This document shows positions 1,581 through 34,085 of a DNA stretch of 64,000 nucleotides, piece by piece; positions within the stretch are counted from its first letter, which is position 1; every line of letters starts with the position of its first letter. Below the pieces are notes generated by a model. That model saw only the letters and a program-made list of their open reading frames with translations. It was not told where the DNA came from and did no database searches. Origin of the DNA: Podarcis liolepis (lineage: Eukaryota); assembly GCA_965112155.1 (NCBI GenBank), contig OZ218104.1; one strand, written 5' to 3'. Both the position numbers and the translations under genes were made by a program.

Positions 1581-1800
1581 GTTACAGATGGGTAGCCGTG
1601 TTGGTCTGCCATAGTCCAAATAAAAAAATTCCTTCCTGTAGCACCTTAAAGACCAACTAAGTTAGTTCTTGGTATAAGCTTTCGTGTGCATGCACACTTC
1701 TTCAGATACACTGTATCTGAAGAAGTGTGCATGCACACGAAAGCTTATACCAAGAACTAATTTAGTTGGTCTTTAAGGTGCTACAGGAAGGATTTTTTTT
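1581..1800. mobile_element. Palindromic non-coding Penelope pLTR derivative
   Basis: Near-perfect hairpin centred on 1711 (arms ~1622-1710 and 1712-1800), nearly identical to the pLTR at 54852-54940 and 56277-56405. Direct repeat TATTTTTTATGC at 1564-75 and 1801-12. Confidence 0.9.
1713..1750 (+). ncRNA. Minimal hammerhead motif (mirror copy on - strand at 1672-1709)
   Basis: gtatCTGAAGAagtgtgcatgcacacGAAAgcttatac. Confidence 0.65.
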
Positions 1801-2754
1801 TATTTTTTATGCATTATTCCCATGATACAACTGAGGTATGTCTACCTTCCTTTTGTGCCACACTGTGCCAACTTTCCTTTTGTCTGAGATGCCAGTTGAT
1901 TAAAGCACTCTGATATATGTTTGTCAAATGTAAATGAATGTCTATACTGGGCAATTCACTCTCCGCTTATCTTGATGGCTCACCTATTTCTTTGAAGTGC
2001 CAAGAGATCTCGTTAGTATTGTAGTATTTCTAAAGGGATTTATGTTTTGAGATCTACATAGTAATTGAGTTTTAGCTCTAGAGAAAATTAATTTTACTAA
2101 CCGCCTGACCATGAGAATCTGTTCAATGTTAAGAACCCCATCATTTTTTAGGTCACCCACCTCTCCCAAGCATCGGAAGGCGATAGGAAGGGGGAAAGGC
2201 AAAGGAAGGGTGGAAGACTTGAGTTTGTCTGGATACTTGGAAGCTGCCTTTTGCTTTCCACGATATAGGCTGCATTTGCTTCAAGTCAAAGAACCCTAGA
2301 TTCTTAGCTCACAAAGGCTCTGTTCAGATGCCATGCAAAACCATGATTTGGTTCTAGGTGAACAAGCTTTCCAGCTTCTCAGATTTGTGTACAGTGATTC
2401 CCGACTTCCCAATCCTAATTTAGGGTAAACCGTAGTTTGCCTTTTTGTCCAAGCAGTCAAGCTGTGGGGTTGTGTTTGCCTGTAAATCAGGATCACAAAC
2501 CAATGTGTGTGTCCCCTGCCCCCCGGTTTCTGATCCTGGCTTGCAGGATCATCCCAGGCCAGAGTTTGCTGGTTTAGGTGCAATGACGAGCTGTAGTGTG
2601 GTGGATGGAGCAATCTATTTCTGGTCCATGTCAGTTTCACATGTGCTAATTCATAATTCTTTTACATTTCCCTTCTGTATTAATCTGTGGTTTTCTTTTT
2701 TTTAAAAAAATTCTCATGTATAAATAGTATTTTCTCACAAAATACACATTTCCA

Positions 2755-3420
2755 TTTTTATTCTTTATTATTATTATTAAATTTTAACAAACTGTCCAAA
2801 AATAAAATAAAAACCATATCAAAAACACACAAACAAAACTGTAAGTAAAAACCAATTTCAAATCTAAAATTAAGGATTCCCCAAATCCCGTGACTTCCCT
2901 CCACCCCATCCTCTGGGTCCTTAATTTTCCTTTCCAACTGCATATCATTATTACTAAAAAAAAAAATTTCATCCAATTTCTTCTATAGTTTCTCTAAAAT
3001 TACACTTGTTCTTAAAATCCTGCCAATGTTTTAACATGTTTACAATACTTTTGAAAATATACAATGAACATTTTCCAATCCTTTCTAAAATTCTTATCAT
3101 CTTGGTCTCTGAGCTTTACAGTTAATTTCACCATTTCAGCATATTCCATTAATTTATTTTGCCAATCTTCCTTGGTCGGGATGGTTTCTTTTTTACATCT
3201 TTGAGCTAACAGGTGCCGGTTGTAGCATACATAAACAAATTCTTCTGTTCTTTTGGCACCTACGCTCCTACAACTCCTAATAGAAAGGCTTCTGGCTATT
3301 TTACAAAAGGTATTCTAAACATTTTTTTCATTTCATTATAAATCATTTCCCAGAATTTTTTAACAATCTCACATTTCCACCACATATGATAAAATTGTTT
3401 ACATTTCCAACACTTGTTGG
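2755..3420 (-). mobile_element. L1/Tx1-like LINE 3' fragment
   Basis: Minus-strand translation FYHMWWKC...FWEMIYNEMKKMF...EAFLLG...EDWQNKLMEYAEM resembles the L1-clade ORF2 C-terminus. A-rich tail near 2755-2780. Confidence 0.7.
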
Positions 3421-4272
3421 ATCCTTCTCTGTACATTTCCATTTTTAATGTCTTGTGTACTTTGCATTATTTCATTGTCTTGTATGTTTATAATTTTATT
3501 TTATTTTCTAAAGTACAGATTTCTAAACCTTTTCTCTCAAACGTATTTCTAAATTTAATCCTAAAATGTGTATTTTTATATGCATTTTGGTACCATTTCT
3601 GAGCAGAGAAACACATCTCAAAATTTTAAGATGACTAACTGTTGAATAACTGTATTCATCCAGGAAGTCGATACATACCGAAATCCAAAAATAATGAATG
3701 AAATCATCAAGCGTCCCTAAACTGTAGTTTGCCTCAAACTAGATCTGGGAATTATGCACAAGAGAAGGGAACATGTGAACCTGAGCCTTCATACCACATC
3801 AAACTTGTAATGGCATAATTTTTAAAAATTATTAATAAAATATTTTTGTCCTGCCTTTTGACTTCACATGCCCATAAGCAGCTCAAAATCACAAGTTAAA
3901 AACATAACTTTATGTCTCCAGGGTATGGTCAGTACCAGGGTATGGTCAGACTACCTTGAAACTACATGTATGCCATCTTTGGTTCTGTTAAGGAAGAAAG
4001 TGGGATATAGATGTAATAAAATAATACAATACAATAGAAAGAATAAAAGCAAAATGTTTGTCAGTCTCAAGAACTGGTAAAAAAGAGAGAGGATTTAACA
4101 CTTGAAAGCCATCAGAAAGGAGACCATCCAGGCCTCCCAAGGTAGGAAGCTCCACCATCTGGCCATGCCCACCCAACTGGGCTCCTGAGCACAGCTGTAG
4201 GGCACAGAGCAAAGCTTCCATTGAAGAGCACCGTGGGCAGGCTCATGTGAGGGAAGGCTGACTCTTCACATA

Positions 4273-4476
4273 CAGTGGTACCTCGGAGGTCCGTTCTTAA
4301 CCTGAAACTGTTCTTAACCTGAAGCACCACTTTAGCTAATGGGGCCTCCTGCTGCCGCTGCGCCACAGGAGCACTATTTCTGTTCTCATCCTGAAGCAAA
4401 GTTCTTAACCCGAGGTACTATTTCTGGGCTAGCGGAGTCTGTAACCTGAAGCGTATGTAAACCTGAGGTACCACTG
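4273..4476. mobile_element. Tc1/mariner (Tigger/pogo-like) MITE
   Basis: TIR CAGTGGTACCTC...GAGGTACCACTG, TA on both sides. Confidence 0.88.
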
Positions 4477-4676
4477 TACACTGTTTAGGTCATTCATCTG
4501 GACATGCCAGAGGGGCTGTTTTATGACCTAAAAGCCAGAACTATCAAAACAAGTCAGACCATCACGTTGGCCAGCCAAATCCCAGAGAAGGAGGAGTTGG
4601 TGTGCAGAGGCTTTCTTTTTGTTTTTCAGAAGTAAGCGCCTGTAACTCTGTGCTATATTCGATTTTTTCAGAAATA

Positions 4677-4918
4677 CAGTGGTACCTCAGGTTAAGTACT
4701 TAATTCGTTCCGGAGGTCCGAACTTAACCTGAAACTGTTCTTAACCTGAAGCACCACTTTAGCTAATGGGGCCTCCCGCTGCCACTGTGCCACCGGAGCA
4801 CGATTTCTGTTCTCATCCTGAAGCAAAGTTCTTAACCCAAGGTACTATTTCTGGGTTAGCGGAGTCTGTAACCTGAAGTGTATGTAACCTGAAGTGTATG
4901 TAACCCGAGGTACCACTG
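4677..4918. mobile_element. Tc1/mariner MITE, same family
   Basis: Same TIRs and TA TSD; internal sequence nearly identical to 4273-4476. Confidence 0.9.
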
Positions 4919-6436
4919 TAATGCCTTTATTTTCTCTGTAAGTGTGTTTGTGTGTGTTTGTGATTCTTCACATTTCTTAGCCTTATACAACTGCTGGACA
5001 CGCTACCAAGTTGCGCTGTGTTTCCAGTTGGACTTCCTTTGTGGGTTAAATAGGAAACCAGTGGCAGGCTACAGTTTGGTGGGGTCTTGATAAAGGACTT
5101 TCAACTGGTGGGTGAGGGCAATGGTGCACATAGCCAATGTAATATTCTGCCAGGACTCATTTCTTGTGGCCATGCTTGCTGGGGCTAATGGGAGTTGAGA
5201 GCCCAGTGGCACCTAGAGAACCACAGGTTCCCTTATCCTTGCTTCACATCAGGAGTGGTTAACCTGTGGCTTTTCAGACGTTGCTGAACCGCAACTCCCA
5301 TGAACCCTAGTCAGTGTGTCCAGTGGCTAGGCATGATGGGAGTTGTAGTTCAGCAACATCTGGAAAGGTAACAAGTTCTCCACCTCTGCCTTAGATAATG
5401 TTGCATCTTTAAATAGTCCTACAGGGAGTGCTCTTTGGATGACAGTGTGTGCTGTTTCACTTGCTTCAATGTGCCCTGTTGCATTGGGGGTCTTCCTGAT
5501 GAGTGGGTACTTGATCTTCCGCCCCAAAGTCCTGCCCTGACAGCATCCAGATGTGTGACACCATGGGCACCACCAACTTTTCTTTTTCTTTCGGATTTTA
5601 TTTATCTTCTAAAAGAAGTAGGAAGAGAGAAGGAAACAAGGGGGTGGGGAGATCAGAAGTGGTTGGAAGAATGAATTCCATTCCTTTAAATGCCTGTGAA
5701 GATGAAATCATTTTGACAGGAACAGTTTTTCCCATCACTGCATAAGAAGCAGCAATTGCCAAAATTCTCTCTTCTGTACAGCAGTGAAAGATACAGGAGC
5801 GTTCTCTGCATAAGCAGAAGCAAATATGGGGACCACGTGACTTTTTTTTTAAAAAAGGAAATAAATTGAACCCTGTGATGTATCATCAGGTTACAGGTGG
5901 CCCCTGGGTCTGAAAAGGTCTTCATAACCCCAGCTCATTTATTTGGGAGTTGTTTAAAGTCAGTAACAGTAAACAACAAGGCTATAGAGAGCATATGACT
6001 TTGGGTGCAGCTGAGACTGTGTGTATGAAAGCCAAAGAGAGATGCTACACGGCAGGTGTAGAATATCTGTACGTACTGCAATGTCTGAGAACAATTTTTC
6101 ATTTCCTCCCCACGTCAAACTCTTGACCCAAATTCATACCACACCTTGATTTAAATATTGGTTAGGGTTATCAGAGGCATGATAAAACAGATTTGGGCAC
6201 TAGATCTGGCCCCCAGGCTGCCGATTGGCCATTCTTGATCACTCCTGATCTACCTTGCCAAGTAGTCATGAAGCTTGTCGAGTTGGAATTTTATGTCCTG
6301 TTCAATAAATAGACACACAGATGCATGCCTGCAAAATAGCACACATCCAGGCATGTAAGCAAAGGTGCAAAGCTGCATATCACCAACATTTAGTGACTCA
6401 AACAGGGATAACTTGCACAGAGATGCATGCCCCCCC

Positions 6437-6439
<3 letters not shown>

Positions 6440-6476
<37 letters not shown>
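6440..6476. repeat. (CA)n microsatellite
   Basis: Direct reading. Confidence 0.95.
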
Positions 6477-6481
<5 letters not shown>

Positions 6482-6983
6482 AGCTTGAGACAGCAGGATG
6501 ACTGTGGCTAATAGAGTTTGGCCGATCCCCCTGCAGGGCTATGATGAGATGGACAAAAAGGAGAGAGAGGGAAGGGAGGGGAGGGGAGGGGAGCCAGACA
6601 AGGAAGGAAAGGCCAAGAGAGCCTGGGCTGGAGATGAGGCGGATCTGATGAGTGACAGCCAGGCCTGGCATGCAGAAGGATGCACGGACATTTTGTCTGT
6701 CTGTTTATCAGGGCTGCAGAGACATCTGACCCACAGCATAATCCCTCTGGGTCGAGGTGGGGTTGCATTCTCCAGGAGCCAGGCCCCTTTGTGCACATCT
6801 GTTATAGACCAAAGCCAAGTCTCCCCACACCCTTTCCTTTTTTTGGTGACCTTGAGCAGGAGCCGTCTCAAACCTTGGACAGAGAGACGCAAGGTCCCCC
6901 CCTTATCTGGCTGTATCCTTGGCACAAACTTGTTTCGAAACAGAGATGTTGTGGTTCCGGCGGGAGGATGGCAGCAGGGAGAC

Positions 6984-6999
6984 ATGGCTGCGAATATGG
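6984..6999 (+). CDS. AHDC1: Predicted AHDC1 start (MAANM-D...) in candidate exon 6860-6999
   Basis: gacATGG strong Kozak context at 6984. Donor TGG|GTGGGC at 7000 (moderate strength) leaves a phase-1 G that completes GAT with the 7500 exon. Candidate acceptor cttgagcAG ends at 6859. Confidence 0.55.
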
Positions 7000-7499
7000 G
7001 TGGGCATGAATGGCATGGTATTCTCTATACCCTGCATGACACAGACAATAAATAACCCCAAGATGACCTGTATATGTGTTATTAGCAGTACAAAGTACAA
7101 TTCAGCAAAATGTCTTCCTGCACTTAGTGATGCCATATACATAACTCCCCTGCCTCACCCCCCCCCGTCCACTATCTTTACAAGGAGGCAGCATCAACTT
7201 ACTAAAAGCCTGCAAGATTGGACAGTGAGGGGGGGAGGGAGAGATACCACCACCCTTCTTCCTTATGCCCTGCCTGCCGCCACAAACACTTGCTCATCTG
7301 CCCTGTCACCTGCACACCCATAACCAAAGCACTGTTGGGCTTTTGTAGTCTTGCTGCCCACCACTCCCGTTGAAATTAAATTTCCTGGTTATTATTATTA
7401 ATATATAAATAAAAAAATCTGTCCCTTCCTCCTCCTTGTGCCTTCTGCCTGCTCTGTCGCTGCTTCACACGCCCGGGTCTGTGTGCTTCCATTTAACAG

Positions 7500-7671
7500 A
7501 TGGGAGCTCCATCGCCTGCCAGCCCATTGGACTGGAAAACGGAGCCAACCCTCCAGCTGAATGGTTCCCGCGCAGCCAGGGCCCGGGGCTGCGGCAGCCC
7601 AACAACAGCGAGGCGGACGGCAGCGAGAGAAACTTCAGGGTGAACCTCCACTGCAAATACGGGCGGCCCAG
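7500..7671 (+). CDS. AHDC1: AHDC1 upstream 172-nt exon (DGSSIACQPIGLENG...NLHCKYGRP), predicted coding
   Basis: Acceptor ttccatttaacAG, donor CCAG|GTAAGC, CpG-rich relative to flanks. Phase 1 in, phase 2 out, joins the 19362 exon as AG+A (Arg) with no stop. Confidence 0.78.
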
Positions 7672-8756
7672 GTAAGCAGGTGGGAACAAGGCAGAGAGTG
7701 GGCCCTCTCCGGCGCTGCTTGCCCCCTGCCGGTAATCAAACATGCTTTCGTGTGTGTGTGTTTCCAAAATGAATGGGGAAATATTTTGCAGCCCAGGGGC
7801 CACATTCCCTTCTGGACCACCACCTGTGGGCCATATGCTAATGGTGGGTGGGGCCACAGGCCAAAAGAGGTGGAGCAACGAATGTGAATTTCACCTTTGT
7901 TCATGAGAATCCTGATCAGAGTTCAAGGACATGTTCCGGACAGGCAAAATCATGTGAAGCAGGGGCAGTAGAGGGTGTGGTCTGGAGAAGGAGTGTGGCC
8001 TAGGGAGTGTTCCAAGGACCAGTTAGGGAAAGTAGGAGGGCTGCATCCAGCCCCTGATTCCTGAGGAGTCCTACCACTGCTCTAAAAATTCCATATCAAT
8101 TTGAACAGGCAAGCAAAGCTAAATAGGTGGGGGATGTGGGTTCACTGGATTGGGCTCAAACTCAAGCTTAGTCTATGTTTTCAGCAGCATCAGATAGTTG
8201 ATTGGTCTCTACCACTTGCAGACCAGAGAGGGGTGCTAATTTTGAATAGGCTTATCCAATGTTTAAAACACAGAGATCTACACAGAGTTCCCTGAAAGCA
8301 GAAAACTAGCAGATCAGAGAGGTCTTGACCTAGCTCTTTGCCTGCCATGCTAGTCTTTTATGTGCAGGGAAAGTTTGGGTTTTTTTAACATTAGTGTATA
8401 GAACCATTAAGAAAAAAGGTGCTGTCTTGCATGCTGCCCCAAGTAGTGCCATGCATTCATCTACAAGTATTTTGCCACCCTTTCTTCTGTAAATTTGTGT
8501 AGTGTCGACCAAATCTCAGCCCAGGGTAGAGCTGTGACTTCGTGATGCTTTCACTTCCTAGACATGTCATGACTCAGTCCCATGTTTGCCACTTCATAAG
8601 CAAATATCGTCTTGGTTGCAGGCTTGTGTATGTTGTTGGAAGGGACCTGGGCCTCACTGCATGCCAAATGTAATTCCCCATGCCAGTTTGCTCACATTGG
8701 TTGACCCTTAACCAGATCAGGTGAAGGGGCCCCTGAAATGAAAGTACTGCAGATAA

Positions 8757-8757
<1 letters not shown>

Positions 8758-8794
<37 letters not shown>
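8758..8794. repeat. (TG)n microsatellite
   Basis: Direct reading. Confidence 0.95.
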
Positions 8795-8798
<4 letters not shown>

Positions 8799-11700
8799 AC
8801 ATGTGTGTGTGCTTAGAATCCCCTGGCTCTCCTTTGTGCCATGGCAGGAAATACGTTTTCATTCCTGTGTTGCCGTGTATGTAAATGCCTACTTTTCATA
8901 GAGCAGAAATGCTTTTATTACCAATTCCTAAGTAGCCCTATGCATTTGGTGTACAAGTGGAAAGAGGATTAGATTTAGACAGGGGTGAGTCTAATCCCCA
9001 TGCAGCCACAAAGCTTGCTTTCTCAGCATAACCTACATCGCAGGATGGTTGTGAAGGTAAAATTTTGTCTCATTGGAGGGAGGAGATATATTTTGAAGCT
9101 CAGTGCAACCAGACATCTAGGAGATTTCCCAATACTGATCCTGAGCATCGAAACACAAGGCTACAAACAAACTATTTAAAACTGCAAGAAAAACCAGGAT
9201 CTCTGTATAGACCTCTCCTGGCTGCCTTAGGGACTAGAAACTTGGGTTTTTCTTTAGAAAGTGAGCAGAGTCTAAGAATTCTGAATGCTCAGTAGTACTG
9301 GGTTTATTCTTTGCACAGTGTAATGATTGAATACACACATCCCTGTTCTTGGCTCCCTAAAGAGCCCTCCCTTTCCTCCTGTTATCTTCAGCCCTTTTGA
9401 TAGAAAGGGGGAGGGGGCTGAGGAAGTGCTCTGGAAGAGAGAGATCTTGGTTCCTCCAACACCCTCCCTCCCTGCTGCCCTCAAGGGCTCTGTGGATCCC
9501 TGCTGTGCACAGCTACTGCCTCCCTGACCCTTCTCACTCCACATCTGGCCAAGAGTTGCCTGGAAACAGCGAAGCAGAGGTGGGGAGGGGAGCGAAAGAA
9601 GGAGTGTTCTCATAAGAAGCGGGTGGGAGTGTACGGAAAATCAGGAGGAAAGCCAGGTCTGCGGCAGACATGGGAGTCCTTCCTTCTTTCCCGTACTGGA
9701 CAGTGTCAGGAAGTTTGGAGGCAGGGGACGGAAAAATCGGAGAATCTAAAAAATGAAGCAAAAACAGCACTTTTGAAAAGATCTGAGCAGATCTAAGGCG
9801 GAAGGGTGATGGTCCTTCACAAAGTGGGGAGGAGGAGAGAGGAGTCTGCTGAATGGTGCAGATGGCTCCTGTAGGTGCAACATGGCAAAGCCTGCCAAAG
9901 AACTGAGGTCACTTCCTGTAGAGGCGCTCTGAGCTGTGGAGCCCTCCTGGAGCTGAGTGAGGGGGAAGGAGGGAAGGCTGTGCCTCGCTAGCCGGCTGGC
10001 TGGGGCCTGCGGTGGAAAAGGTTTCAGTGCCAAGACTGAAGGGAAGAGGAACAAGAAGAGGCTGGACATACAGTATGTGAAACAACATGGGAGAGATGTT
10101 TATGGGTGGGGGGTTGAGAGTGCAGGCACGGGAGGAGAGAATGGAAGGAGGCTGGACTGCCTCCCTCCCAGCCGCCCAGTTGAAGAGGCACATCTTGACC
10201 CATACTTCTCCATCTCCAAAAATACAATGTGAGCCTCTCTGAGTGATAATGCAGCATAGCGCATACCTGTTCTCTGCCCTTCTTGTTTCGTAAGGAATGG
10301 TGTGCGTTGGGAGTCAAAGCCATTAATGCCTTCCCCCTCCCACATGCAGGTTAACCCTTTCCCATATTAGCATCTTTCCAAATACAAATAAATAGCTCAG
10401 AGTACCCATCACCTTGCATGAGGTGGTAAATCGCCCTGTGATCCTCAGATGAAGGGCAGTGTAGAAATGTAATTAATGATAATAAATAATCCAGCCAGAG
10501 TTTAGCATTATTTTAAAACAATTCCTGGGATTTCAGCAGCAGAGACTTTAATTCCCATATTGAAATCTGTAGGATTTGAAAATATGTTTAACTGTGCTTT
10601 CGTTGAGCCCCATTGTATGGATTAAGCTTTTTCTTTTAGGGGAAAAAGTCAGGATAGCATGCCACTTATCATTTACCCATGCACCCTTATGTTTTGGCTA
10701 AAAGAATTGTACCACTTGCTACATCAACATATTATGGTTGAGTAGAGCTATACCTCCCTTCCATTCTATTTATTGCAGTATTTATTTCAAGTGGAAACTG
10801 CAGCAAAATTTTGCAGTGTGGAATGGTCCTGTTCAAAAAGCCTGCCAGCCATGTCCTTTCCCAGGATACTCTATTCTCCCTCCCTACTAGTTTCTCTACC
10901 CCGCCCCCCCAGCCCATCAGCATTCCATGCCCATAGAGCACACTCCGTCCTCATTGAACTTTTGTTGGGAGTGCCTCCCCACAACATCAAGCAGAATTTG
11001 TCTTCTTCTAAATTTGTGTTTTTTCTGTATTCTTTGTTGTTGTCACTTCTCTCCTGTGCATGGGTGGTGCTGTTTTGGCTACAAAAGGATAAGCACTTGG
11101 CTAATGCATTTGCTATTAGTATATAACAGGGGTGTGGAATTTGCTGCCCTCCAGATGTTGCTGAGCTGCAGCTTCAAACATCTCTGACCATTGACCAAGC
11201 TGGCTGGGCTGATGAGAGATGTCCAACAATATCTACAGATCCATAGGTTCTCTACTCCTGGTATATAGGATGTATCTGATTGTTTTATTTCTTTAAGATA
11301 GTTGCATGCTGCATCTCCCGCTCTCAGAACGGCATGAAAAACCAACACTTTGTAAGGCAGAAGGCAGCTGTAAATTAAAAGCATTAAACAGTACGCAATT
11401 GCATTTTTGCAGCACAGAGTGGGAAAGGGAGAAAGGAGGCATTCTGTTGAGCTGGGCTGGCTTGTTCTCAGGGGAAATGTTCTTCCCTTCTGTGCTTGCT
11501 GTGGCTCAGCCTCTTTCTCCAGCACCAGGCCTGGAACCATCTCAGCCTCCTTTTAGTGCAGCCTACAAGCCTGGAGCTGCTACCCACCAGACTGGAGCCT
11601 GAGGGCATAACCACATGGCATTTTCCCATCAGGGCTTGGATGCACTCATTCAGAATGGCAACTGTGCCAATCCCCCATTGGTCCACATGGCAGGTTTTGC

Positions 11701-12094
11701 AGAGTAGAGATGGGGATCATTGGGTCAGTGGAGGTGGCGCAGTCCACCCAGAGAAATTGCATGTAACCTTGGTGGGGGCTGCTTCCCACCTCCAGCTTAG
11801 CTCTTTAACAAGAAATTCCTTCAACACGTTCCTGTGTTTCCCAGTTGTACATTGCAATATTCAGCCACAGAATCAGTGGAAGTGTCAAGACTAGGTTGCA
11901 TTAGTGAATTTCTCTGAATCTAGATCTGGAGAATAACATTTCCAGTCCAGGACCCCTTTGGTCAGGAGCTGGGAAAGAGAATTTACCAGGAGAGGCACGC
12001 GGCCACTATTTATAGTAGGCCAGGCCAGGCCAGAGGCTTTGTGCTACCTACTAATGACAAGGGTTGATATTTCACACACTCTATTTCCTAAGTC

Positions 12095-12390
12095 CTGAAG
12101 AACATGCATACGGCCCGTCTAGCTCAGTATCTTCTTCTCACAGTGGCCAACTAGGTGTCTGTGGGAAGCCTACAAGCTGGACCAGAGTTCAACAGCACTG
12201 CCCCACTTGTGAGCCCCAGCAAATGGTATTCAGAGATATACTGCCTCCCAACAGCTGAGGCAGAAAGTAGCCACTTTGGCTAGTAGCCACTGACAGTCTT
12301 ATCCTCCATGAATTTATGTCTACTCTTTTAAAGCCATGCAGGTTGGTGGCCATCACTACTTCTTGAGAGAGCTAATTCCATAGTTTAACC
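12095..12390 (-). mobile_element. CR1 3' fragment
   Basis: Similar to CR1 ends at 39750-39970 and 47205-47510. Confidence 0.6.
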
Positions 12391-15300
12391 AGTGCAAAGA
12401 CCTTGCTAGGTCACAGCTGTCAGAAACAGCTCTATCTGTGTGCATTTGCTCCATGTGGTGAATCACAAGTTGTTCCTGCAACACTTATGGGGCAAGTGTC
12501 CCAATGCCTACCACTGTCAGCGCTTTTACAGAAAGTCCTTGCAACACACTGGACTGGTGGATTCTTTGTTCTATTCCGTTTTTAACAAATAATAGAACTG
12601 ACAGAACCACACAAAAGGAGTTAGAATATATTCTGTTAGCTGTGAGATATACAGTGTAAAGTATAAATACCTGAACTCATTAAATGTGCTTCCTGGGGAA
12701 CCATGCACAACTTCCAATCTGGTGGAATCTTGACCCACCAGTTGGGAGTCTCTGGACTGGAAACATACCTTGTTAAAAACTGAAAGGCAAAAAGTTTCTC
12801 ATATCACTCATTGAGGTTTTAAAGGAAACTGCCCAGGTTTGGGGAAACAAGGTTAAATCATCATACAAGGGCACACACCAGGCTAGTTGGCTTTAAAACA
12901 CAGGGTGCATAATGACGAAACATTGCTTGAGCAGTAGGACACTCTGGAAGCGCATTCAGTACAGTCTGTTTTAAACAAAACAGATTTTCTCCCAGGTCAA
13001 ACTTAGGCGAAATTGCTTCTTCTGCTTTGCAACAGAAGTGGGTTGTGCACAGCGCTGATGGTCCAGTGTTTGTGGCAATATGAATCTACTTTCCCAGCCC
13101 AACCCCCAGTTCTGTTACTTAAAAACAACAACAATATTTTAAAAGCCTTGAATTGAGTTTCATTGACGTGAACTTACGACACTTGACATAAAAAGGCAGA
13201 TAGCCTGTCTGAAACATGGGGAAAGAGGCAAAACAAATGACTAATCAGTGTTTGAACTGGTGGCATGTACCCCTGCAGATCAAACTGTAAAGGTCAGAGA
13301 AGGTATGTATTTGTGCACAGTCACAGATTCAAGCACCCTGTTGTTCAAAGAGAGCACAGTGCACCAGGAGCTTTTTCAGCACATCTTGTGGAACATCTCA
13401 TAAGTAGTTTATTTCAGAATGAAGGCAGGTCTAACACCACAGATAGTTTAACAAAGTCCCTCCCCACAGGCTCATTACAAAGACTCGTCTTCCTCTTTTG
13501 GGAATGACCTCTGCTAAACTAGCTCTGCAAATTTCCAGCATGGTGAATATAGACTGGGGAGAAGGCAGCGGAAGAAAGTACCAATTGTCTAGCACCTATA
13601 TTATGGCCAGCATATCTCTCTCACTCCAGTTCCTCCATCGGTATTTCAAACTTTAATGATGTTTCATGAAGTATGGAGAATAGATGCAAAAACAAACATT
13701 CATGAACCAGTTTTTTAAAAATGCAAACATAACAATGGAAAGGGCAAGGGGGGGAGATGTGCTTCCTTTGTACGTTTTGACTGTATGACTTAAGAGAGGA
13801 GAAGTCTCAACCATCTCAGCCCATAGCGGCCACAGGAAAGTGCTGACCTCTGCTGACTTCCAGCCACTTCCGTGGCAGTGCTGTGAAAAGATCCAGCTGG
13901 CACATGTGGTACCCGGTCTGCATCCTGCCATTGGCATCCTGCCAGCACCACATGTGTAGAGTGGTTTGTGGCAGTGTGTAAAAACAGAGCCAGACTTTGA
14001 TTATCACTAGAAGTAATCCCACCACTTCCATTGTTAACCTCTGAGCGCCATCAGAAGTTTGGGCTTCTGATTTACGCCCATTGCAACTAATATAAATCTA
14101 GCAACAACAACAAAGTTACCTTCAAAGTTGCTTTTACCTTGGTGGTATCAGTTGCCCTATAAATGGGAAAGCAAAGTAGGTTTATGGCCCTGGAAACAGA
14201 AAGTAAGGCCCCCTGGCAAGCTATCCAGTTCTTCCTTTGTTATGTGTGCTTGAATCCACTAATGGCTGAGTAAGGTGAAAGATTTGCAGGAGTCTTTGCC
14301 AACCTGATGCCCTCTGGATGTTTTGGACTACAACTCCCATCAGCCCCAGCTCTCCTGGACCCTCAGTTAAAGAGGCTGGTGAGAAAGGAAAGTCCCAATG
14401 GCTCTTTCTGCCATTTTGGGAATGTATTTCTTTCCTTGAGCAAAACTTACTTTTATATTTTATGTCCTCTACTTTTTATTCATAGCCTGTCCTACCAATA
14501 AGAGCTCAAGATGCTACTGTGTTGTTGTTTTTTTTTAAAAAGAATATTGCTGCATAAACACATCACTTACACAACAGTAAACTTTTAATACGTGTTTTTA
14601 TTATTTTAAAGTTTACTGTTTTGTTGAACTTAATTGTGCTGTTATTCCCCACCCCCCACTCCAGGGCACTCAGACATCTTAGTAATCAAGGACTCTATCT
14701 AGCTTAGTAGTAAAGTACTACTTTGCATGCAGAAGATCCCTGATTCCCGCTCTGGCATCCCCATTTGAAAGGCTCAGGCACAGGTAATATGAAAGACCTC
14801 TCTGTTTCTGAGACCCTGGAGAGCTGCTGCCAGTCAAAGCAGACAATACTTGGCTAGATGGACAAATAAACTGACCTAGTGTAAGGCAGATTACTACGTT
14901 CCTATACTTGTTCCTCAAAAGATGATCTCAGGGTACAGGTAGACCATTGTGGATTGAATCTGGAACATTTTGCATGCAAGGCAGATCTTCAGCACTGATC
15001 TACAGCCCCTGACTCATATTCCCACACATAATTGCATGGGGGTATACAGTATGTTTGAACCAGGCAGCTTGGCTGATCTCTGATTATCATATGATATTCT
15101 TTCTTTTATATCTATGTATCCATCTACTTATTTGAAAATTATATTCCACCCTTCTAATGCATATGCATGAGTCAGGGTGACTTACAACAATTAAAAATCA
15201 CAATATCATAATAAAACAATAAAAACAATATAAAATGGAGACAGGCTCAGCAGATAAAAACTGAGTTCATCCCATTAAAACAGTTTACCTGCCAAGCAAC

Positions 15301-15439
15301 GCAAAAAACTCTATTTGCCTGGCAGTATTTAGGGAGCCAGTCTCAGTGTTTAGGGTCTGAAGCACACACCACACAGCTTAGTTAGAGCCAGCTCAGATTT
15401 CCTTAAGGAGTTTGGACTGTACAATTTTTAACTCCAATT

Positions 15440-15830
15440 ATTTATTCATTAGATTTGCATACTACCCTTTATGCATAAAACTCAGGGCAGTTCACAATAT
15501 AAAATTACAATATAAAAAACACAATATATATAATATTAAGAAGAAGAAAACCAAACCAATAATCTCCCCTCCCACAACACGTTTGAAAGGGTATCAGATG
15601 TCACTCAATCAAAGGACTTTTTCCTTGTGCCTAAATGTGTATAATGAAGGTGCCAGATGAACTTCCCTGGAGAGAGCATTCCACAAACGGGGAGCCACTG
15701 CAGAAAAGGCCCATTCTTATGTTGCCACCCTCTGGACCTCTCATGGAAGAGGCACATGAAGAAGGGCCTCAGAAGATGATCTCAGGGTACAGGTAGGTTC
15801 ATGTGGAGAGAGGCAATCCCTGAGACTATA
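15440..15830 (-). mobile_element. L2 LINE 3' fragment
   Basis: agagcattccacaaacggggagccactgcagaaaaggccc, typical reptile L2 3' region. Confidence 0.6.
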
Positions 15831-16976
15831 ATGACCAAATGCTCCTCCACAACAACACAGAAAAGTAGCTCTTAAGAGAATCTTAGAATCTCTTCCCACT
15901 AACATGCTAGGCTTTCATCAGCAGGGAATGCTTTTGAATGAAGGAACATTCCGTCATATGAGCCTCTACTGACAGTCTAAAGTGATGCAATTCAGGCATA
16001 AGAAGAGCCTTGCTGGATCAGACCAAATGCCAATCCAGTCCTGCCTTCTTTTCTCACAGTTGCCAACCAGATGCCCATGGGAAGACAATATGGTTGCTCA
16101 ACCCTGTGAGGACTAGGCCTTCGAGAGAACCAGGACCTGTCCCTACCATTAGGCAGAGATAGGGCTGCCATATATTGAAGCACAGAAAAGAGGACAGTCC
16201 GAGCCACTGCCAGCCCAAGCTGGGGAAAGAGGCGCGTGGGCATGTGGGCTGCCGCCATGCCTGCACCCCTCTTTCCCTTGCTCGGGTTGGCAGTGGCCAC
16301 TGCGTGCAGAGCAGCCCCAAACCTGAGCTGCCACACCCGAGCCGAAAAACTCCCCCTAAAAGCCAGACATTTCCTTTAAAATGTAAAAATCCCCCTGGAT
16401 GGGAATATTGGCCCCCCAAAAGAGGATGTGTCCAGGATTTCCCAGATGTATGGCAACCCTAGGCAGAGATTGTGGAAGCTGATGCTCAGGCGGCCAGTAG
16501 TTGGATCATCTGTAGGACCACCTCTACCCGATGAAGCAACCTAGACCCTGCACTCTTCATCTGAGATCCTTCTCTGTCTGCCTCCTCCCAAAGAAGGTGC
16601 AGAGGATAGTGGCACAAAGCAGGGCTTCTCCGTGGTGGCTCTTTGGTTGATGAATGCTCTCCCTGGGAAGCCATGGCTGGTTCCATCACTACCTGTGTTA
16701 AGGTGCCAGGCAAAAACATGTTTATTCAGCTATGCCTTTGGACCTTAATTTCCTGCATATATTCCAAGAGGGGAGGTTGAGTTGGACCTGCTCCTTTATT
16801 TGTATTACAGTGACCATTTGGGGTTCTTCTTCCTCTACATTTTCTATTTGTTTTCAGGGCTTGGTTTTTGGGGTGGTTTTTTTTAAAAAAAAAAACTACT
16901 GATAAATATAACAAATAACTGCAACAACAGTAGGTGACACCAACTAACCCTGCTGTTGCCACCATTCTCTGCAAAG

Positions 16977-17037
16977 GCAACACTGAGACTCAGGAGGAGG
17001 ATGCAAGCAGTCGGTGCCACTCCCAGAATGGCTGTGT
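16977..17037 (+). other. Candidate 61-nt AHDC1 cassette exon
   Basis: Branch-point-like ACTAAC (16943-48), tract ending ctctgcaaAG, donor TGT|GTAAGC. Confidence 0.5.
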
Positions 17038-18689
17038 GTAAGCTGGGCGCTGGCTGAAGGCAGGCTGAAGTTGCCCAAATGGACCAGCCTCTACTGGGGA
17101 GAGCGAAACAGTCCACCCAGGCAGCTGGCTTTGTGGTGTCATGACAGGACAGCAAATTATTACTGGGGTGTTTTGTTTGTTTTGTTTTTTAGTGCCGGGT
17201 GGGGCACTTGTGGAGTTTTCTATCTCAGGGGCCACAAAAGCATGACGCTCTTTGGGTTCTGTGTTTTTGGGCTGGTGGGGTTGGAGCAGAGGACGAAGAC
17301 GCCATTTGCTGCTCGCCTCCAACAGGAAAGCCTGCGAAGGCAGAGACGATACACATGTTCTGCTTCATGTGTAGTCATAGCTCCCTTGGCCTCAGCGTAG
17401 GCCGGTTATCATCCGTGCGGCCAGTCTGAAGCAAGGCTTCCCCAGACAGACTAGGGTTGCCACAGTCTGAGGGAGGAGACTCGTTTGAAGTGGAGGCTGG
17501 CCCTTTGGGGCTAGGCTGGAATGATGAATGTTCAGTTTGGGCCTCCCTTCTCCCTGCCAAGGGGAAAGTTGCACACAAAGAACTTCCATTCTTTCCCTCA
17601 GCGTCACTCTCTTTCTCTGTGTCCTTCCTTCCTTCCTTCTTTCCTTCCTTCTGTCACCCTTTCTTCCAGAGTGTGGGGAGGCACAGACTGTGTAACTGAT
17701 ACTATATATATAAAAAGGGGGGGGGGACCCTTCTGGTGCCAGGTGTGCGTTCCCTCAGCCAGCTCTGGGCAAGGAAAGTGCTCTGCTGCTGTCGCACAAA
17801 AAGGGGAACTGCACAAAGAGGGCTTTCTGTCAGGCCAGAGAAGTAGCACAGCCAGGTCAGAAAGTTTAAACAGAAAGTGGGAATAACTTTGGGAGGGGGT
17901 TTTAACCATTTGACAGACATGGCGGCTTGGAAGGGGATCTGTAGCTCATCAGGGACACCTAGTGGAGACGTGGCTGCAAGAGCCTGTAGCCAAAAATGAC
18001 TTGTGCTACATATACCAGGTACTTGACTTTCTGTTAATACATCCAGAATATCTGCCTTCCTCCACCATCATAACAATCCATGCTTATAGTTTCCATTTCT
18101 CCCATTGGCATGCATCTGAAATACCCACTTTTTTATTTTTTTTATTTCTGTCAGAGTTACCCACCTCCACTCTGAACAGAGGCTCTGAGCTTTTAAATGA
18201 CAGACAGAAATAAAAACAATTCAATTCCCTCATGACTGCACCTGTTGAATGTCTGTCTGTCTGAATGTGAGTGAAAGCTGGGTAGTAAGAGCTACCTGAT
18301 CCACATTAAAGAGTGCCGCCCTAAACACACCTACCAGGCAGTAACCACCACTGAGCTCAATGGCGCTTCTGAGTAAGCGGTCATAGTTAAAATCTTCATA
18401 AGATGAAGCAGCCATGTTTGGGAGAGGTGGATTTTCCTCAGAATCTCCACTGTAGTGGAACCTCACAATGACTCGTTTTATTCCCTTTGAGAATCAGGGC
18501 CAAAACAGGCATGATGTGGGAGAGTTGTTATATTTGCCTATAAAGCAGCCAGGGGTGAATTGAATGCTTAACCCTTTCCTTGGTGCCATATTCTCAATCT
18601 AAATAGCTCCCCCTCCCACTTAATTAGCTACAGAAATAGCTTCTATTAGCTCTGCATTAGAACGAAATGCAGATACCTGTGCTGGGCTA

Positions 18690-18738
18690 GTGTGTGTGTG
18701 TTTGTTTGTTTGTTTGTTTGTTTGTTTGTTTGTTTGTT
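18690..18738. repeat. (TG)n(TTTG)n microsatellite
   Basis: Direct reading. Confidence 0.9.
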
Positions 18739-19361
18739 ACTTTAGGGGTAATAGCAGCATTTGAGGGATATTAGACAGCAAAAACAACACTTGTTCTCTG
18801 AGCACATCTGCTCCAGTCTAAAAAGGGCATTGTAGCTGCTTTAAAGTGCTTGGGGGTCCCCCTCCAAAAAAGAAATCCCCCATCATACCTATTTTGGGGC
18901 CCGCAAGGGCGACTGGTGAAGTATAAAGCTGTTCCAGCAATTCGTTATCAGTCATAGCCCAGAAACACTGTTAAGAGCAACCCTCTCAAAAGAAGGTATT
19001 GGTTTGAGGTGCAAAGGCACAGTGCTAATGAGAGAGAACCCTTCTGAGGTGGGATAATAATCAGAACCACAGGTGGGACCAGCAAAATAATATGGTGGAG
19101 TGCTCCTGTTCAAGGTGTCAGCCGGCCATGCCTTCTTTCATTAAGTCACCTTTCCACCCCCACACTGCTTGTCTGTGCAGAACTGGGGCACCAGAAAACA
19201 CAGAGGATATTTGTACAACTAAATGCCCAGCTGTAGATTTGGGTCCCTTGTTGCAGAACAAGATTGACATGAGTGAGCCACCGACAGGAAGGACTGCAAA
19301 GGGTGGCTCTGATTGTTCTCTAGGCTAAACTTCTTCTTTTTTTTGTCTTCCTTCTCCACAG

Positions 19362-19399
19362 AGAACTCAAGTGTAACAGCAGGAACAGCAAAGCAGAAG
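19362..19399 (+). CDS. AHDC1: AHDC1 upstream 38-nt exon (ELKCNSRNSKAE), predicted coding
   Basis: Long pyrimidine tract ending ctccacAG (19360-61), donor GAAG|GTGAGT. Phase 2 in, phase 1 out, stop-free and in frame with the main exon. Confidence 0.8.
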
Positions 19400-19559
19400 G
19401 TGAGTTCTATGCTGTGGACTTTGTAATTTCACCCCACTCTTCTCTTGCAAAGCAGCAGTGAAACAAATGGTGCTGAGGACCCTTCTGTACAGGTCATTTG
19501 TTGTGTAACACATGCACATTTGTTCTCCTGCATTGGGCTCTGTCTGCATGGCTTTCATC

Positions 19560-20205
19560 TGGACAGGAATAGCCTAACTTCTGCCATCTATGCTCTGGTA
19601 ACCCCTAGGTTAGATTACTGCAATGTGTGGTAAATGGGGCTGCTTCCGAAGACAGTCCAGAAACTGGTGCAGAATTTGGCATCTAGGTTGATCACCAGGG
19701 CAAGATGGTTTGAGCATATAACACTAATCCTGACCCAATTGCACTGGCTGTCAATCAGTTTCTGGGCCAATTCAGGCTGCTGGCTTTGACCTATAATGCC
19801 TTAAACTGCTTAGGGCCACAATACCCCAAGGACCAGTTCTCCCCATGTGAGCCCTACTCAGACACTGTGCTCATCATCTGAGGACCATCTGGAGGGTGAC
19901 AACATGAGAATGAGCCTTTTCTGCAGTGGCGTCCCATTTGTGGAATGCTCTCACCTACTGCCTTCACTACAAATTTTTAGGCACCGGGCAAAAACTTTCC
20001 TCTACATTAATCAGGACTTTATTTGTGGCCTTTTAGAAGTGGGTGGGATATTTTTAATGTATTTCTCTTTCCTCTTGGTTTTAACGTATCTATGTTGGGT
20101 TTATTGTCTGTCTTGTTTGTTTGTTTGTTTGTTTGGCCATAAGTTGCTTTGGGTTGCCCTGGGCAAGATAAAATGACTTAACAAATTTAAATAATAACAA
20201 TAATA
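19560..20205 (+). mobile_element. L2 LINE 3' fragment
   Basis: AIYALVTPRLDYCN motif, LHWL-like segment (ttgcactggctg), A-rich tail. Confidence 0.75.
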
Positions 20206-20319
20206 GCGTCCTCCATGAAGCCCCAGAAATGAATGCTGTCTTATATTGAAGTCTATCACACACTTCTACATGAACCAATTAACATGAAAAACTTAATGTC
20301 TCCTCTTTGCCTGTTCCAG

Positions 20320-23300
20320 GTCCAGGTTCCACGTTTGCAGATGTACATCCCAGCAACTGTTCTGCCAAGAGGCATGCCGGTGAAGAAGAATTTAGGAAGC
20401 GCCTGAAATCACAGGGCCCGTCAGTCCCACCAGCAGGAGGCGCCATCCGCAGTTCTTCTGATTACTCCCAAGAGCCAAAGTTATACCAGGCAGGGCACCC
20501 TGGTCAAAAGGTTTCAGCGTGTCTGGCTGAAAAAGCCTTGTCATTTGGCATGCTCAGCTTTCCTGAAGGTTCCTGTTCAGCATTAGGCCGTGAGCACAAG
20601 TCTAGCTCACTGCGTCATGCTGAGACGGCTGACCGGTACAAGAGCTTTCACGCCCATGGCAGCACCAAGGCAGAGGATTTGCCGCCGGCCAATGTTCTGG
20701 GCTGCCCTGTTGACACCCGGGGCCTAGATGAGACAGCCACGCACGACAGAGCTGCCAAGACCTTCTCCAATGCCACTCTGGCCTCAGGAAGGTGCAACAT
20801 TGACAACATCATCTCGCTGCTAAAGAGCAAGTGTGGAAATGGCCGTATCAACCTCTACCCTGTGGTGCAGCTCATAGACATCATGAAGGACATCAACCGC
20901 CTCTCCCAGGACCTGAAGAGCTGTGGTGTTCACCTGGACTGCAGTGGCCTAGAGCTTAACAGCCACCCACCACTCAACGAGGAAGGCCAGGATCAGGGCC
21001 TGCAGTACAGCTTCTACTCCTCACCCATGCTTGCCAGCAGCATCCGTAGCCCCGAGGAGGTAGCAGTGCAGGGCAGCACCAAAGCTGAGCTGCCCAAGCA
21101 GACCCGACCCACTGGCATCTGTGAAGGAGAGTCAGAGGGGGACACTCAGAGTGCCCAGTACCCAGCCACCCAGAGTAGCCCTGCTTTGAAGGCATCATCA
21201 AGCAGCATAGATGAAGCTAGCAGCTTGGAATCTGATACCACTGATTATCCCGAACTGGCTGATACAGATATCCTGAGCGAACTGGCTTCTTTGGCATGCC
21301 CAGGCCCCCAGTTAATAGATCATCAACATCTGGAGCCCCACTCCCAGTTGCTGCAAAGCCAGGGGCTAGATTCAAGGTCCCAGTTAATTGGTTCACAGTC
21401 TCTGGAACACCAGCCTCAGCTAGTAGACTCTAAGTCTTTAGAGCCTCCTCCAGAACCGCTAGCATTGCAGACGGTGGAGCCACTGCCTGCGCCACTGGGG
21501 CTGCAGACTCTGGAGCATTTGGAGCTGCAGAATCTGGAGCCCTTGTCTGAATCACTATCACTTCAGTCCCTGGAACCCCTTTCTGAGCCACTAGGGCTCC
21601 AGTCTTTAGGGACTCTGGACCACCAATTGCTCGACTCCCAAGCCCAGCTTCTGGATCCGGAAGCCCAGCTGCTAGGCTCCCTGCCCAAGTTGTTAGACTC
21701 CCAGCCCCAGCTAGAGACAGACGAGTCCCTAGGAGCACATTCGCTGCAGCCCAGCTCCCACCTTGGAGGCTGCTCCCTGAGAGGAGTAGTAAGGCGAGGA
21801 GGAGGGCGGGGAAGGGATGATCACAGGAAATATGCTCTACGTAGAACAGATAAACCAAAGATGCTCTGCCGCCGGCGGAGAGGTGGCCGGGGCCGGCGAG
21901 CAGAGATTGTAGCTGAGAACAGAGTCCTCCCCATGGCTGTACCAGTGGAGGTGGTGATGGCACAACCAGATGAAGTCAGGATGCCGGTGACAGCAGAAGT
22001 GATGGAGCCCATCGTTTCCCCACTGGAACCTGAAGATGGCCAGAAACCAGCCGCCAACCTGCAGGTCCAAAAACCCAAGTGCCGTGGAGTGCGAAGGATG
22101 GTGGTGAAGATGGCCAAGATCCCTGTCTCCCTTGGGAGGAGGAACAAGACGACATACAAAGTGTCCTCTCTCAACAGCAACTTGAACCTGGAAGGCAAAG
22201 AGCTCACAACCTGCAGCTCATTGGAGCCAACTCCGCTGCTGAAGATGAAGAACAATGGTCGTAATGTGGTGGTGGTCTTTCCTCCAGGTGAAATGCCTAT
22301 TATCCTGAAGCGCAAGCGGGGGAGACCCCCAAAAAACCTGATGCTGGGTCCCTGCAAACCCAAGGAACCCACCCCAGAAGTGAAAAAGCGGAGGAGGAGG
22401 AAACAGAAACTGGCATCACCACAGCCCTCCTATGTCGCCGACACCAATGATAGTAAAGCTGACTACTCTGATGTCCTGGCAAAGCTTGCCTTCCTAAACC
22501 GCCAGAGCCAGTGCTCGGCTCGTTGCTCCCCGCCTCGCTGCTGGACCCCAAGTGAGCCAGACTCCATCCACCAAGCCCCAGACACTCAAAGCATCTCCCA
22601 CTTTTTGCACCGGGTCCAAGGTTTCCGCAGACGTGGTGGTAAAGGAGGCGGGTTTGGACGTGGAGGGGGCCACTCTGCCCGGTCACCTCGCTGCTCCTTT
22701 AGTGATTTTTTTGAAGGCATCGGCAAGAAGAAGAAGGCAGCCCCAGGGGCAGCCATGCATGCTGACCCTGTTCACCCACGAAAAAGGGGCCGGCCAGAGC
22801 CTGACTCCATGGAGAAGCCGAAGAGGAAGAGGCGGTCCCGCAAGAATGGGGCGCTGTTTCCTGAGCAAAACCTTGGCCAGAACTTCAGTGATGGGACCTC
22901 CGAGTGGGGCGGAGACAAAGAAAGTCTTTGGATGTCCCATCATGGACACCTCTCCAGCCAAGCCAACAGGAACTGCAGTTACCAAGACTCTCGGACCTTC
23001 CACTCTTCGACGCTGGAGTCAAGTTCATCCAGTAGGACTGGTTTTTATGGTGGGAGCAACCCATCATCACAGTCCGAGCTAAGCCAGGAGAGACAGAGCC
23101 TCTTCACAGGCTATTTCCGCTCCCTGCTGGATTCAGATGATTCCTCTGACTTGCTAGACTTTGCCCTCTCAAATACACGCTCTGAGTCACGGAAATCTGC
23201 TCCTTCGTACACGGCTCCTCCTAATGCCATTGCTACACAGAGGGGCATGGCATCTTACCCAAGCAGAGGGGGTAAAGTCACGCCCTCCTCCACCACCACT

Positions 23301-25331
23301 ACTGCTACTACTGAGGCACCCTTTCACACAGCCATGACAAGCCGGCAGTCGTTCCCTCCCAGCCGATCAGCGGGATACAGCCTTTCTCAGGCTGCTTCGG
23401 AATGCCGCAGCACAGATGCCTTTCAGAAGCTGGCGCCTCTCTCAGCTGTCTCCAGGTCACCCACCGCCCACTCCACAGCAGCCTCCAGCTATGCACAGTA
23501 CGGCAACTTCAGCAACAGTGGTGGGCAGAGCGTGACACCTTCTAGCTTGTTCCAGCAAGGGAAGCCATACCATGCCACACAGGACTGCCCCAACAACAAA
23601 GACTGCAGCTTCACATATGGCAGTGGCAACAGCTTGCCCTCATCACCGAGCAGTGCCCATAGTGCCAGCTATGCCCAGCAGACTTCGGGGCCCAGCTTGC
23701 CATTGAATAAGGCCTCCTTCTTCAACAGCTCGGATCCCAGCCAGTTCTCCAGCTCCTCCCACACGCCCATGAGGTGCGACAGCCGGGCAAGCACTGTGTC
23801 CCCAGGTGGCTACATGGTCCCTAAGGGCTCAGTCTCCTTTCAGCCCTCCCCAGAGAACTGCCGGCAGTTTCCCAGTGCCTCCCAGTGGGCTTTCCGGCAA
23901 GGCTACAGCAACCTGGACTGGAACTCTGAAACCTTCAGCCAGCTTTACAACCCAGGCTTTGACTGCCATATCAACGAACCCAATGTTATCCTGGATATCT
24001 CCAACTACACACCCCAGAAGGCCAAGCAGCAGACCGTCTCTGAGACCTTCTCCGAGTCCTCATCGGACAGTACCCAGTTCAACCAGCCAGCTGGCTACAG
24101 AAGGGCCAACAGCGAGGCTTCGTCTAGTGAGGGCCAGTCCAGCCTCTCTAGCCTGGAGAAGCTGATGATGGACTGGAATGAGTCATCTTCGGCCCCAGGT
24201 TACAACTGGAACCAGAGTGTCTTATTTCAGAGCAGCTCCAAGCCGGGACGTGGTAGGCGGAAGAAAGTGGACATATTTGATGCTGCTCATCTGAACTTCT
24301 CGACAGGTGCCTACCCTTCCAAGAGGGGCACGGGGGCCAGGCAGCCACGAGGCTCCCGAGGTGCCTGTGCCTCCAAGAAGGAGAGAGGCACTGGCAAGAC
24401 CAAGTTCCCTACCAAATCCCAGCAAGTGAACCCCATGTTTCAAGACAGTACAGATTTGGGCCTGGACTACTACAGTGGAGACAGCAGCATGTCCCCACTG
24501 CCCTCCCAGTCGCGGGGCTTTGGGCTCAGCGAAAGGGACCCCTGCGACTTTGCTGGGCCCTATTCCATGAACCCCTCCACCCCTTCAGACGGCACCTTTG
24601 GGCAAGGCTTCCAGAGTGACTCCCCTGGCCTAGGGCAGGCAGACCTGGACAGCAAGCATTTCCCCGCCCTGCCCCACCAGCTTGCTGCCCCGCCCCCTCA
24701 GCAGACTGTGTTTGAAGCAAGCTTACAGAAAGCCTTCTCGCCCAACTGCTCCCCAACCCTGGCCTTCAAAGAGGACTTGAGGCCCAGCGACATCCGCAAG
24801 CTCCCGGCCTGCGACTCGCTCAAACACAGCATGCAAGGGGCTGGTGGCATGCCCCACCCAGCCGCGCACATGTCTTGCCGGGACCTGCCCATGTCCCAGC
24901 CACACTACGACTCGCCCAGCTGCAAAAACCCCAACTATTGGTACTCCCCCACCTCCAGCACCCGCAGCCCTCCATACGACAACAAAGCCGGGGTTGGGAT
25001 GCTAGTGGACTTCATGGGGAGAAGCCCAGATGTCTCCTGCCTCAACCCCCACCTGACCAGCCCCCCCAACACCAACCCTTCCAAGAGCGAGAAGGAGCCT
25101 ATGGACATGGCAAGGGCCCACCACCGAGGGGCCTACATTTGCCCCTTGATGAACGACTTGAATATCTCCCCAGTCCCAAGAGACTCTATGCTGCCGCTGC
25201 AGGACAACTATAGGTACCCCAGTTTTGCACCCCAAGGGCACCCCATCATGACTGCAGCCCAGAAGAGCGCGTTTTTGGGTCCAATGCTAGAGCAACATCC
25301 TGAGGACACATTCACAGTCACCTCATTGTAG
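20320..25331 (+). CDS. AHDC1: AHDC1 / transcription factor Gibbin, main coding exon
   Basis: 5-kb uninterrupted ORF. Recognisable AHDC1 segments: [19 protein letters not shown]-hook [54 protein letters not shown]-terminal [11 protein letters not shown]. Acceptor tctttgcctgttccAG ends at 20319 (phase 1). The TTG 'start' at 20307 lies in the intron's polypyrimidine tract. Confidence 0.97.
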
Positions 25332-33848: not shown

Positions 33849-34085
33849 GCCCATAGCTCAGTGGTAGAGCATCTGCCTTGCATGCAGAAAGCCCAAAGTT
33901 CAATCTGTGACACCTCCAGGTCAGGCTAGGAGAGAACCTTATCTGAAACCATGAAGAGCTGCTGTCAGTCACTGTAAACAATGCTGAGCTAGATGGACCA
34001 GTGGTCTGATAGGCAGGATTCCTGCATTGTGGGTGGTTGGACCAGATGACCCCTTGGGTCTCTACAATTCTATAAGTCTATGAGC
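33849..34085 (+). mobile_element. tRNA-derived SINE (Squam3-like); further copies ~14700-14900, 30820-31000(-), 34450-34600, 40135-40230, 58795-59200
   Basis: A/B box head tagctcagtggtagagcat...ttgcatgcagaa...gttcaatc, body ending gagctagatggaccagtggtctga. Confidence 0.7.

Follow-up and report, generated by a model that had tools for sequence, protein, structure and literature searches.

Is Gibbin, the product of AHDC1, read from a single coding exon in lizards, or does the lizard protein carry an N-terminal module encoded by further exons upstream? AHDC1 is the Xia-Gibbs syndrome gene and a leading neurodevelopmental disease gene. The question is raised by a 64,000-nt stretch of Podarcis liolepis DNA (assembly GCA_965112155.1, contig OZ218104.1; hereafter the window), which contains no N and for which an initial annotation had proposed additional coding exons ahead of the large exon of this gene. 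The proposal touches a general description of the gene, because a 2025 review states that AHDC1 has one coding exon that is preserved in all vertebrates; the same review places the locus between FGR and WASF2 (PMC12476444). We compared the window with Gibbin models from other vertebrates, all of them predicted proteins (Gnomon, Ensembl or ab initio). The comparison indicates that lizard Gibbin is very probably a long form with extra upstream coding exons, the first of which would lie upstream of the window.

Coding exons upstream of the large Gibbin exon

The window carries the AHDC1/Gibbin gene. When residues 1-160 of the translation of the large exon (exon 4 of the long form) were used as a query, the best match was the Gibbin protein of Zootoca vivipara. 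Compared over the whole exon, the translation is 98.3% identical to the Zootoca protein and 99.6% identical to the Podarcis muralis and P. raffonei models. It contains two AT-hook cores (RKRGRP, at residues 664 and 820), and its C-terminal end is of the PDZ-binding type (...TFTVTSL), with TVTSL directly followed by the stop codon. The DUF4683 domain (Pfam PF15735) was detected with 45.8 bits in the Zootoca ortholog, at the above 98.3% identity to the large exon of the window, and was listed on nearly all matches of the exon 4 query. The first 77 nt of the exon (20320-20396) are upstream of the position at which the mammalian protein starts.

Many of the Gibbin matches are 1770-1840 aa long, which exceeds the 1669 codons of the large exon. 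The N-termini of these longer models are composed of an exon 2 peptide (DGSSIACQP...LENG...NLHCKYGRPR), an exon 3 peptide (ELKCNSRNSKAEG) and the start of exon 4 (PGSTF...), joined at the very junctions that the initial annotation had proposed. In the window, exon 2 encodes (D)GSSIACQP...LENG...NLHCKYGRP(R), a peptide identical to Zootoca residues 53-110 by tblastn, and exon 3, which is kept in all sauropsid and caecilian models, has 100% identity to Zootoca residues 110-123. Taken together, the window peptides of exons 2, 3 and 4 are identical to Zootoca Gibbin residues 53-200 (tblastn), and the LENG, PAEWF and NLHCK..RPRELKCNSR motifs of the long form are united in one frame across the three exons. 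Splice donors were scored with a simple donor matrix, in which the donors at 7672 and 19400, those of exons 2 and 3, reach 7.3 and 8.2 bits.

Peptides of the exon 2-4 type, with LENG and NLHCK-like motifs, recur in 53 of the 147 proteins that we fetched. Because of this recurrence, and because of the identity to Zootoca residues 53-200, exons 2, 3 and 4 stand above chance. The proposal that several exons, namely 7500-7671, 19362-19399 and 20320-25331, encode Gibbin in this lizard and give it an N-terminal module is thus supported by orthologous models. When the 56-aa exon 2 peptide alone was searched against 1.84 billion representatives, 11 matches passed E<=1e-10 and every one was sauropsid-like; this search understated the breadth of the module, and models from amphibians, a lungfish and a sturgeon surfaced with the turtle N-terminus as query. 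Pfam gave no match for exon 2 or for the turtle N-terminal fragment.

The intron between exons 2 and 3 contains a 61-nt candidate cassette exon (16977-17037, plus strand) that is flanked by AG and GTAAGC and is open in two of its three frames. Its inclusion between exons 2 and 3 would shift the frame, and none of its translated 8-residue words occurs in the 147 Gibbin-related proteins fetched.

The first coding exon

Where does the long form begin? The initial annotation had placed its start at ATG 6984, in a 16-nt exon encoding MAANM that would be spliced to exon 2. As a mechanical description this holds up: all four intervals are bounded by GT/AG, their combined length is 5238 nt, and they encode 1745 codons that run uninterrupted to a terminal stop. 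The frame is open upstream to 6498, as had been noted, and lies in an open reading frame (ORF) that we found to span 6498-7055; the GT at 7000 gives the phase 1 required by exon 2, and lacertids use several alternative first exons, all of which end in phase 1. However, the donor of the 16-nt exon at 7000 scores 0.44 bits, versus 7.3 and 8.2 bits at the real donors, and 125 candidates in positions 1-7480 combine an in-frame ATG, an open frame and a phase-1 GT, among which the 16-nt exon ranks 14th. A protein starting with MAANM is found in no ortholog model, including 13 lacertid and amphisbaenian isoforms. Pfam gave no match for ORF 6498-7055, and a GC rise of the promoter type was not seen in the region around the 16-nt exon. 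With so weak a donor, so many equivalent candidates within 7.5 kb and no ortholog model that uses it, the start at ATG 6984 is unsupported. The 16-nt exon is no better than chance, and the 1745-aa product and the extension of about 101 aa that follow from it are therefore mechanical results and not a likely protein. We consider it very unlikely that this ATG, whether in the 16-nt exon or in a longer exon ending at 6999, is spliced to 7500 even as a minor alternative. A (CA)n microsatellite (6443-6477, plus strand) is located just 5' of ORF 6498-7055.

A different first coding exon is conserved among the orthologs. It encodes about 45-52 aa with the pattern M(NM)LSLKV(G/A)SGAEGS...QQ(P)A in lizards, an amphisbaenian, turtles, birds and caecilians, and is still recognisable in frogs, lungfish and sturgeon (MLSVKVVRAADGSMN). 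Among the 147 proteins fetched, 22 models begin with the motif M(xM)LS.KV. In the closest annotated relative the extension amounts to 148 aa, made up of 52 aa from this first exon, which is missing from the window, and 96 aa from exon 2, exon 3 and the start of exon 4; the initial figure of about 101 aa is superseded accordingly. In lacertids, RefSeq isoforms begin with the conserved first exon or with one of several alternatives, and a short form of 1593 aa is also predicted. When the conserved first exon (peptides from Zootoca and others) and six alternative lacertid N-termini were searched against the window by tblastn, only chance-level matches were obtained. The conserved and alternative first exons are thus presumed to be located beyond the window start, over 7.5 kb 5' of exon 2.

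In a model of the tegu Salvator merianae (Ensembl-derived), the conserved first exon is separated from exon 2 by about 36 extra aa, which points to a further cassette exon in some squamates. A counterpart of this segment was not found in the window.

Start codons in squamates and other vertebrates

The position of the mammalian initiator Met (MRVKPQG) is occupied in the window by AAG (Lys; 20397..20399, plus strand) in the context ...FRKRLKSQG. This replacement, which had been pointed out at the outset, extends to all squamates that we compared, with K or R in 19 of 19 models. The residue is M in turtles, a crocodilian and birds, and also in the tuatara and mammals, whose models begin there; it is I in caecilians and R in a salamander. 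This distribution in the aligned proteins is most simply explained by a gain of the Met in the stem lineage of amniotes, followed by its loss in squamates.

Downstream of this position, the frame first offers an ATG at 20550, again as initially annotated, and this codon is also the earliest in-frame Met anywhere in exons 2-4. Three lacertid RefSeq isoforms, each 1593 aa long, begin precisely at its equivalent. There is no in-frame Met from exon 2 to 20550, and the conserved 152 residues that precede it can therefore be translated in the lizard only via an upstream first exon.

Conservation and nature of the module

Extended models of 1770-1840 aa are found in lizards, a snake, turtles, a crocodilian and birds. 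With the turtle N-terminus as query, the module was also recovered from two caecilians, a salamander, several frogs and a lungfish (weaker form), and the sturgeon yielded the first-exon motif. The earlier suggestion that the module is possibly ancestral agrees with its presence in these groups.

We compared the conservation of a 95-aa segment of the extension (exon 2, exon 3 and the start of exon 4) with that of the next 150 aa and of the following 450 aa. In eight of nine non-mammal pairs the segment was conserved equally to, or more than, the following 150 and 450 aa, with 1-4 gap positions. Between Zootoca and duck, for example, the values were 76% for the segment, 58% for the next 150 aa and 64% for the following 450 aa, and between turtle and caecilian they were 62%, 54% and 52%. 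The sequence LENG and several Arg residues are invariant in an alignment of 28 sequences. This pattern is that of purifying selection on a protein, and it is difficult to square with untranslated status of exons 2 and 3.

An alternative would be that exons 2 and 3 form a 5' untranslated region (5'UTR), as in mammals, that their open frame is an artefact of longest-ORF prediction and that lizard translation starts only at 20550. Although RefSeq also predicts the 1593-aa isoforms that start there, the module reads as protein without frame breaks from caecilians to birds, remains recognisable in frogs and lungfish, and is conserved like or above the adjoining accepted coding sequence in the eight pairs. 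A start at 20550 alone would also lose the 76 residues between 20322 and 20550, which include the homolog of the canonical mammalian N-terminus. We regard this alternative as extremely unlikely.

Several points nevertheless weigh against a long Gibbin form in this species. Duck and chicken, the closest pair compared, show the extension below the main protein (88% for the segment versus 97% for the next 150 aa and 94% for the following 450 aa). The supporting proteins are all computational models, and some of their N-termini are visibly wrong through intron read-through (P0014, P0019 and P0034). The conserved first coding exon is outside the window and hence unseen in this genome, and the support for splicing and translation in this species consists of comparison with predicted proteins.

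To characterize the module, we predicted the structure of a 620-aa turtle fragment with AlphaFold2, using the 28-sequence alignment. In the prediction the module is disordered, with a predicted local distance difference test (pLDDT) score below about 55, and only residues 264-304 are helical; this helical pair, the first confident element, is within the canonical part of the protein. The module would most likely act as a disordered region with short linear motifs.

Leader exons in mammals

With few exceptions, mammalian models have MRVKPQG as their N-terminus and a length of about 1550-1603 aa. The initial annotation had equated the extension exons with exons treated as 5'UTR in mammals. This equation is borne out in part: homologous leader exons can be recognised in models from non-human mammals, but they are diverged and their frame is inconsistent. 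Models from bats (n=2), a marsupial, a bear and a marmot have extensions of 87-200 aa that contain diverged homologs of exon 2, exon 3 and the start of exon 4. In bat and whale models the sequence runs GPGPGFSHPHVS...VRMRVKPQG, which is homologous to the sauropsid GP..(F/I). stretch with a one-codon difference, and two rhinolophoid bats have an upstream ATG (MPGQLPAQ...) that shares the frame of the main ORF. The RefSeq model of the marsupial Gracilinanus (1646 aa) has an exon-3-like peptide as well, and the bear and marmot models have an exon-2-like peptide, DGSLP.CL.IGLD..A.PA..VQRA. LENG is absent from the N-terminally extended mammalian models. The mammalian leader peptides match the window only weakly, at exon 2 and the start of exon 4, and between Rhinolophus and bear the leader-derived peptide has 70% identity with 35 gap positions, compared with 97-98% for the main protein. 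These protein models suggest that the module decayed to 5'UTR in therian mammals.

The same models could instead mean that the extension is functional in mammals too, and that translated leader exons have been overlooked. The marsupial model combines its exon-3-like peptide with one like the start of exon 4, the models of Rhinolophus and Hipposideros (1687 aa) read the homologous sequence in frame, and so do the bear and marmot models with their DGSLP.CL.IGLD peptide. However, nearly every mammalian model begins at MRVKPQG; the bear model is flagged LOW QUALITY and has its large-exon start in another frame, the marmot model requires an odd internal skip, and the conserved first exon is faint and seen in these two models only. 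The leader peptides are also far less conserved than the main protein, as the comparison of Rhinolophus with bear illustrates. We consider translation of a functional module across mammals unlikely.

Decay of the module could be part of a longer history. In this scenario, the 5'UTR exons of mammalian AHDC1 are decayed ancestral coding exons: the Met would have appeared in the amniote stem, mammals would have dropped the module of about 150 aa, and squamates would have lost the Met and come to depend on the module. Some mammals (rhinolophoid bats, a marsupial and conceivably humans) may then keep an extended proteoform via an in-frame upstream ORF. As a whole, this scenario has a small chance of being correct. 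If it is true, some variants assigned to the 5'UTR would be coding variants; any bearing on human variants is speculative.

A model for lizard Gibbin

In summary, the main Gibbin protein of this lizard is very probably a long form of about 1790 aa encoded by four coding exons. The first (about 52 aa, MNMLSLKV) would be upstream of the window and would be joined by a phase-1 splice to 7500-7671, then to 19362-19399 and then to 20320-25331, so that about 148 residues would be placed ahead of the mammalian AHDC1 start position. The module probably dates back to the ancestor of bony vertebrates and is kept by purifying selection outside mammals; by prediction it is disordered, with the short invariant motifs LENG and NLHCKH.RPRELKC. 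The internal Met used by mammals occurs only in amniotes and has probably been substituted by Lys or Arg in squamates. Transcripts with a first exon that gives no in-frame ATG would be translated from 20550 to give the 1593-aa short form, and alternative first exons, presumably used from alternative promoters, would give variant N-termini.

Annotation status and implications

The extension had been put forward as overlooked. This does not apply to the databases, in which RefSeq and Ensembl-derived models of many non-mammals, including the closest lacertids, already carry it: long forms are annotated in RefSeq for lacertids, many other sauropsids and amphibians, and in Ensembl-derived UniProt entries for Pelusios and Salvator. 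The extension is therefore known at the database level. A literature search that paired AHDC1 with 'N-terminal extension' found no paper, and the extension is absent from the literature searched.

The public gene models contradict the single-coding-exon description, since the non-mammalian proteins carry a conserved module of about 150 aa from three further exons. This is relevant to the design of knock-outs, morpholinos and expression constructs in chicken, Xenopus, fish and reptiles, and to the ortholog alignments that are used for judging constraint. It also gives an evolutionary account of how the single-exon form arose in mammals.

Features of the window

The coordinates of the Gibbin features and of two further elements are collected in Table 1. 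The partial tRNA match may be a tRNA-derived SINE (short interspersed nuclear element) or a pseudogene. GIY-YIG endonucleases, the class to which the domain on the minus strand belongs, are of the kind carried by Penelope-like retroelements.

Table 1. Coordinates of Gibbin exons, start codons and other elements in the window
Feature	Position	Strand	Remarks
Intron part upstream of exon 2	1..7499	+	neither the conserved nor the lacertid alternative first exons inside
First exon proposed initially (MAANM)	6984..6999	+	unsupported; most likely intron sequence
Exon 2 (second coding exon, long Gibbin form)	7500..7671	+	AG/GT ends; entered in phase 1; donor 7.3 bits
Exon 3	19362..19399	+	38 nt; AG/GT ends; donor 8.2 bits; encodes (R)ELKCNSRNSKAE(G)
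Exon 4 (large coding exon)	20320..25331	+	1669 open codons; stop codon 25329-25331; homologous to the single mammalian coding exon
ATG, predicted short-isoform start (MLSFPEGSC...)	20550..20552	+	first in-frame Met in exons 2-4
Partial tRNA match	33854..33909	+	Rfam, 36.8 bits; model positions 8-63 of 71
327-aa ORF	55117..56100	-	GIY-YIG nuclease domain (Pfam PF01541, 25.8 bits)

Comparison with known Gibbin forms

Mammalian AHDC1/Gibbin, with its single coding exon, about 1600 aa and MRVKPQG start, is homologous to the large exon of the window and has DUF4683, the two AT-hooks and the TVTSL end in common with it. It differs in starting at an internal Met that is missing in squamates, and its upstream exons are annotated as 5'UTR, are diverged and have inconsistent frames. 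The extended mammalian models (Rhinolophus ferrumequinum X1, 1687 aa; Gracilinanus agilis XP_044523865.1, 1646 aa; Ursus americanus, LOW QUALITY, 1810 aa) share with the lizard a same-frame read just upstream of the Met (GPG.GF..PHVS...RMRVKP), but their starts differ from one another and are not conserved, their frames are problematic and they are without LENG and without the conserved first exon, of which the bear model has a faint trace at most. Lacertid RefSeq entries for the long isoform of transcription factor Gibbin (Zootoca vivipara XP_034974164.1, Podarcis muralis X2 XP_028594524.2 and Podarcis raffonei X2 XP_053254606.1) begin with the exon of about 52 aa (MNMLSLKV...) that is outside the window, and none begins with MAANM; they have the same exon 2-4 peptides and junctions as the lizard gene described here, and 98.3-99.6% identity to it over the large exon.

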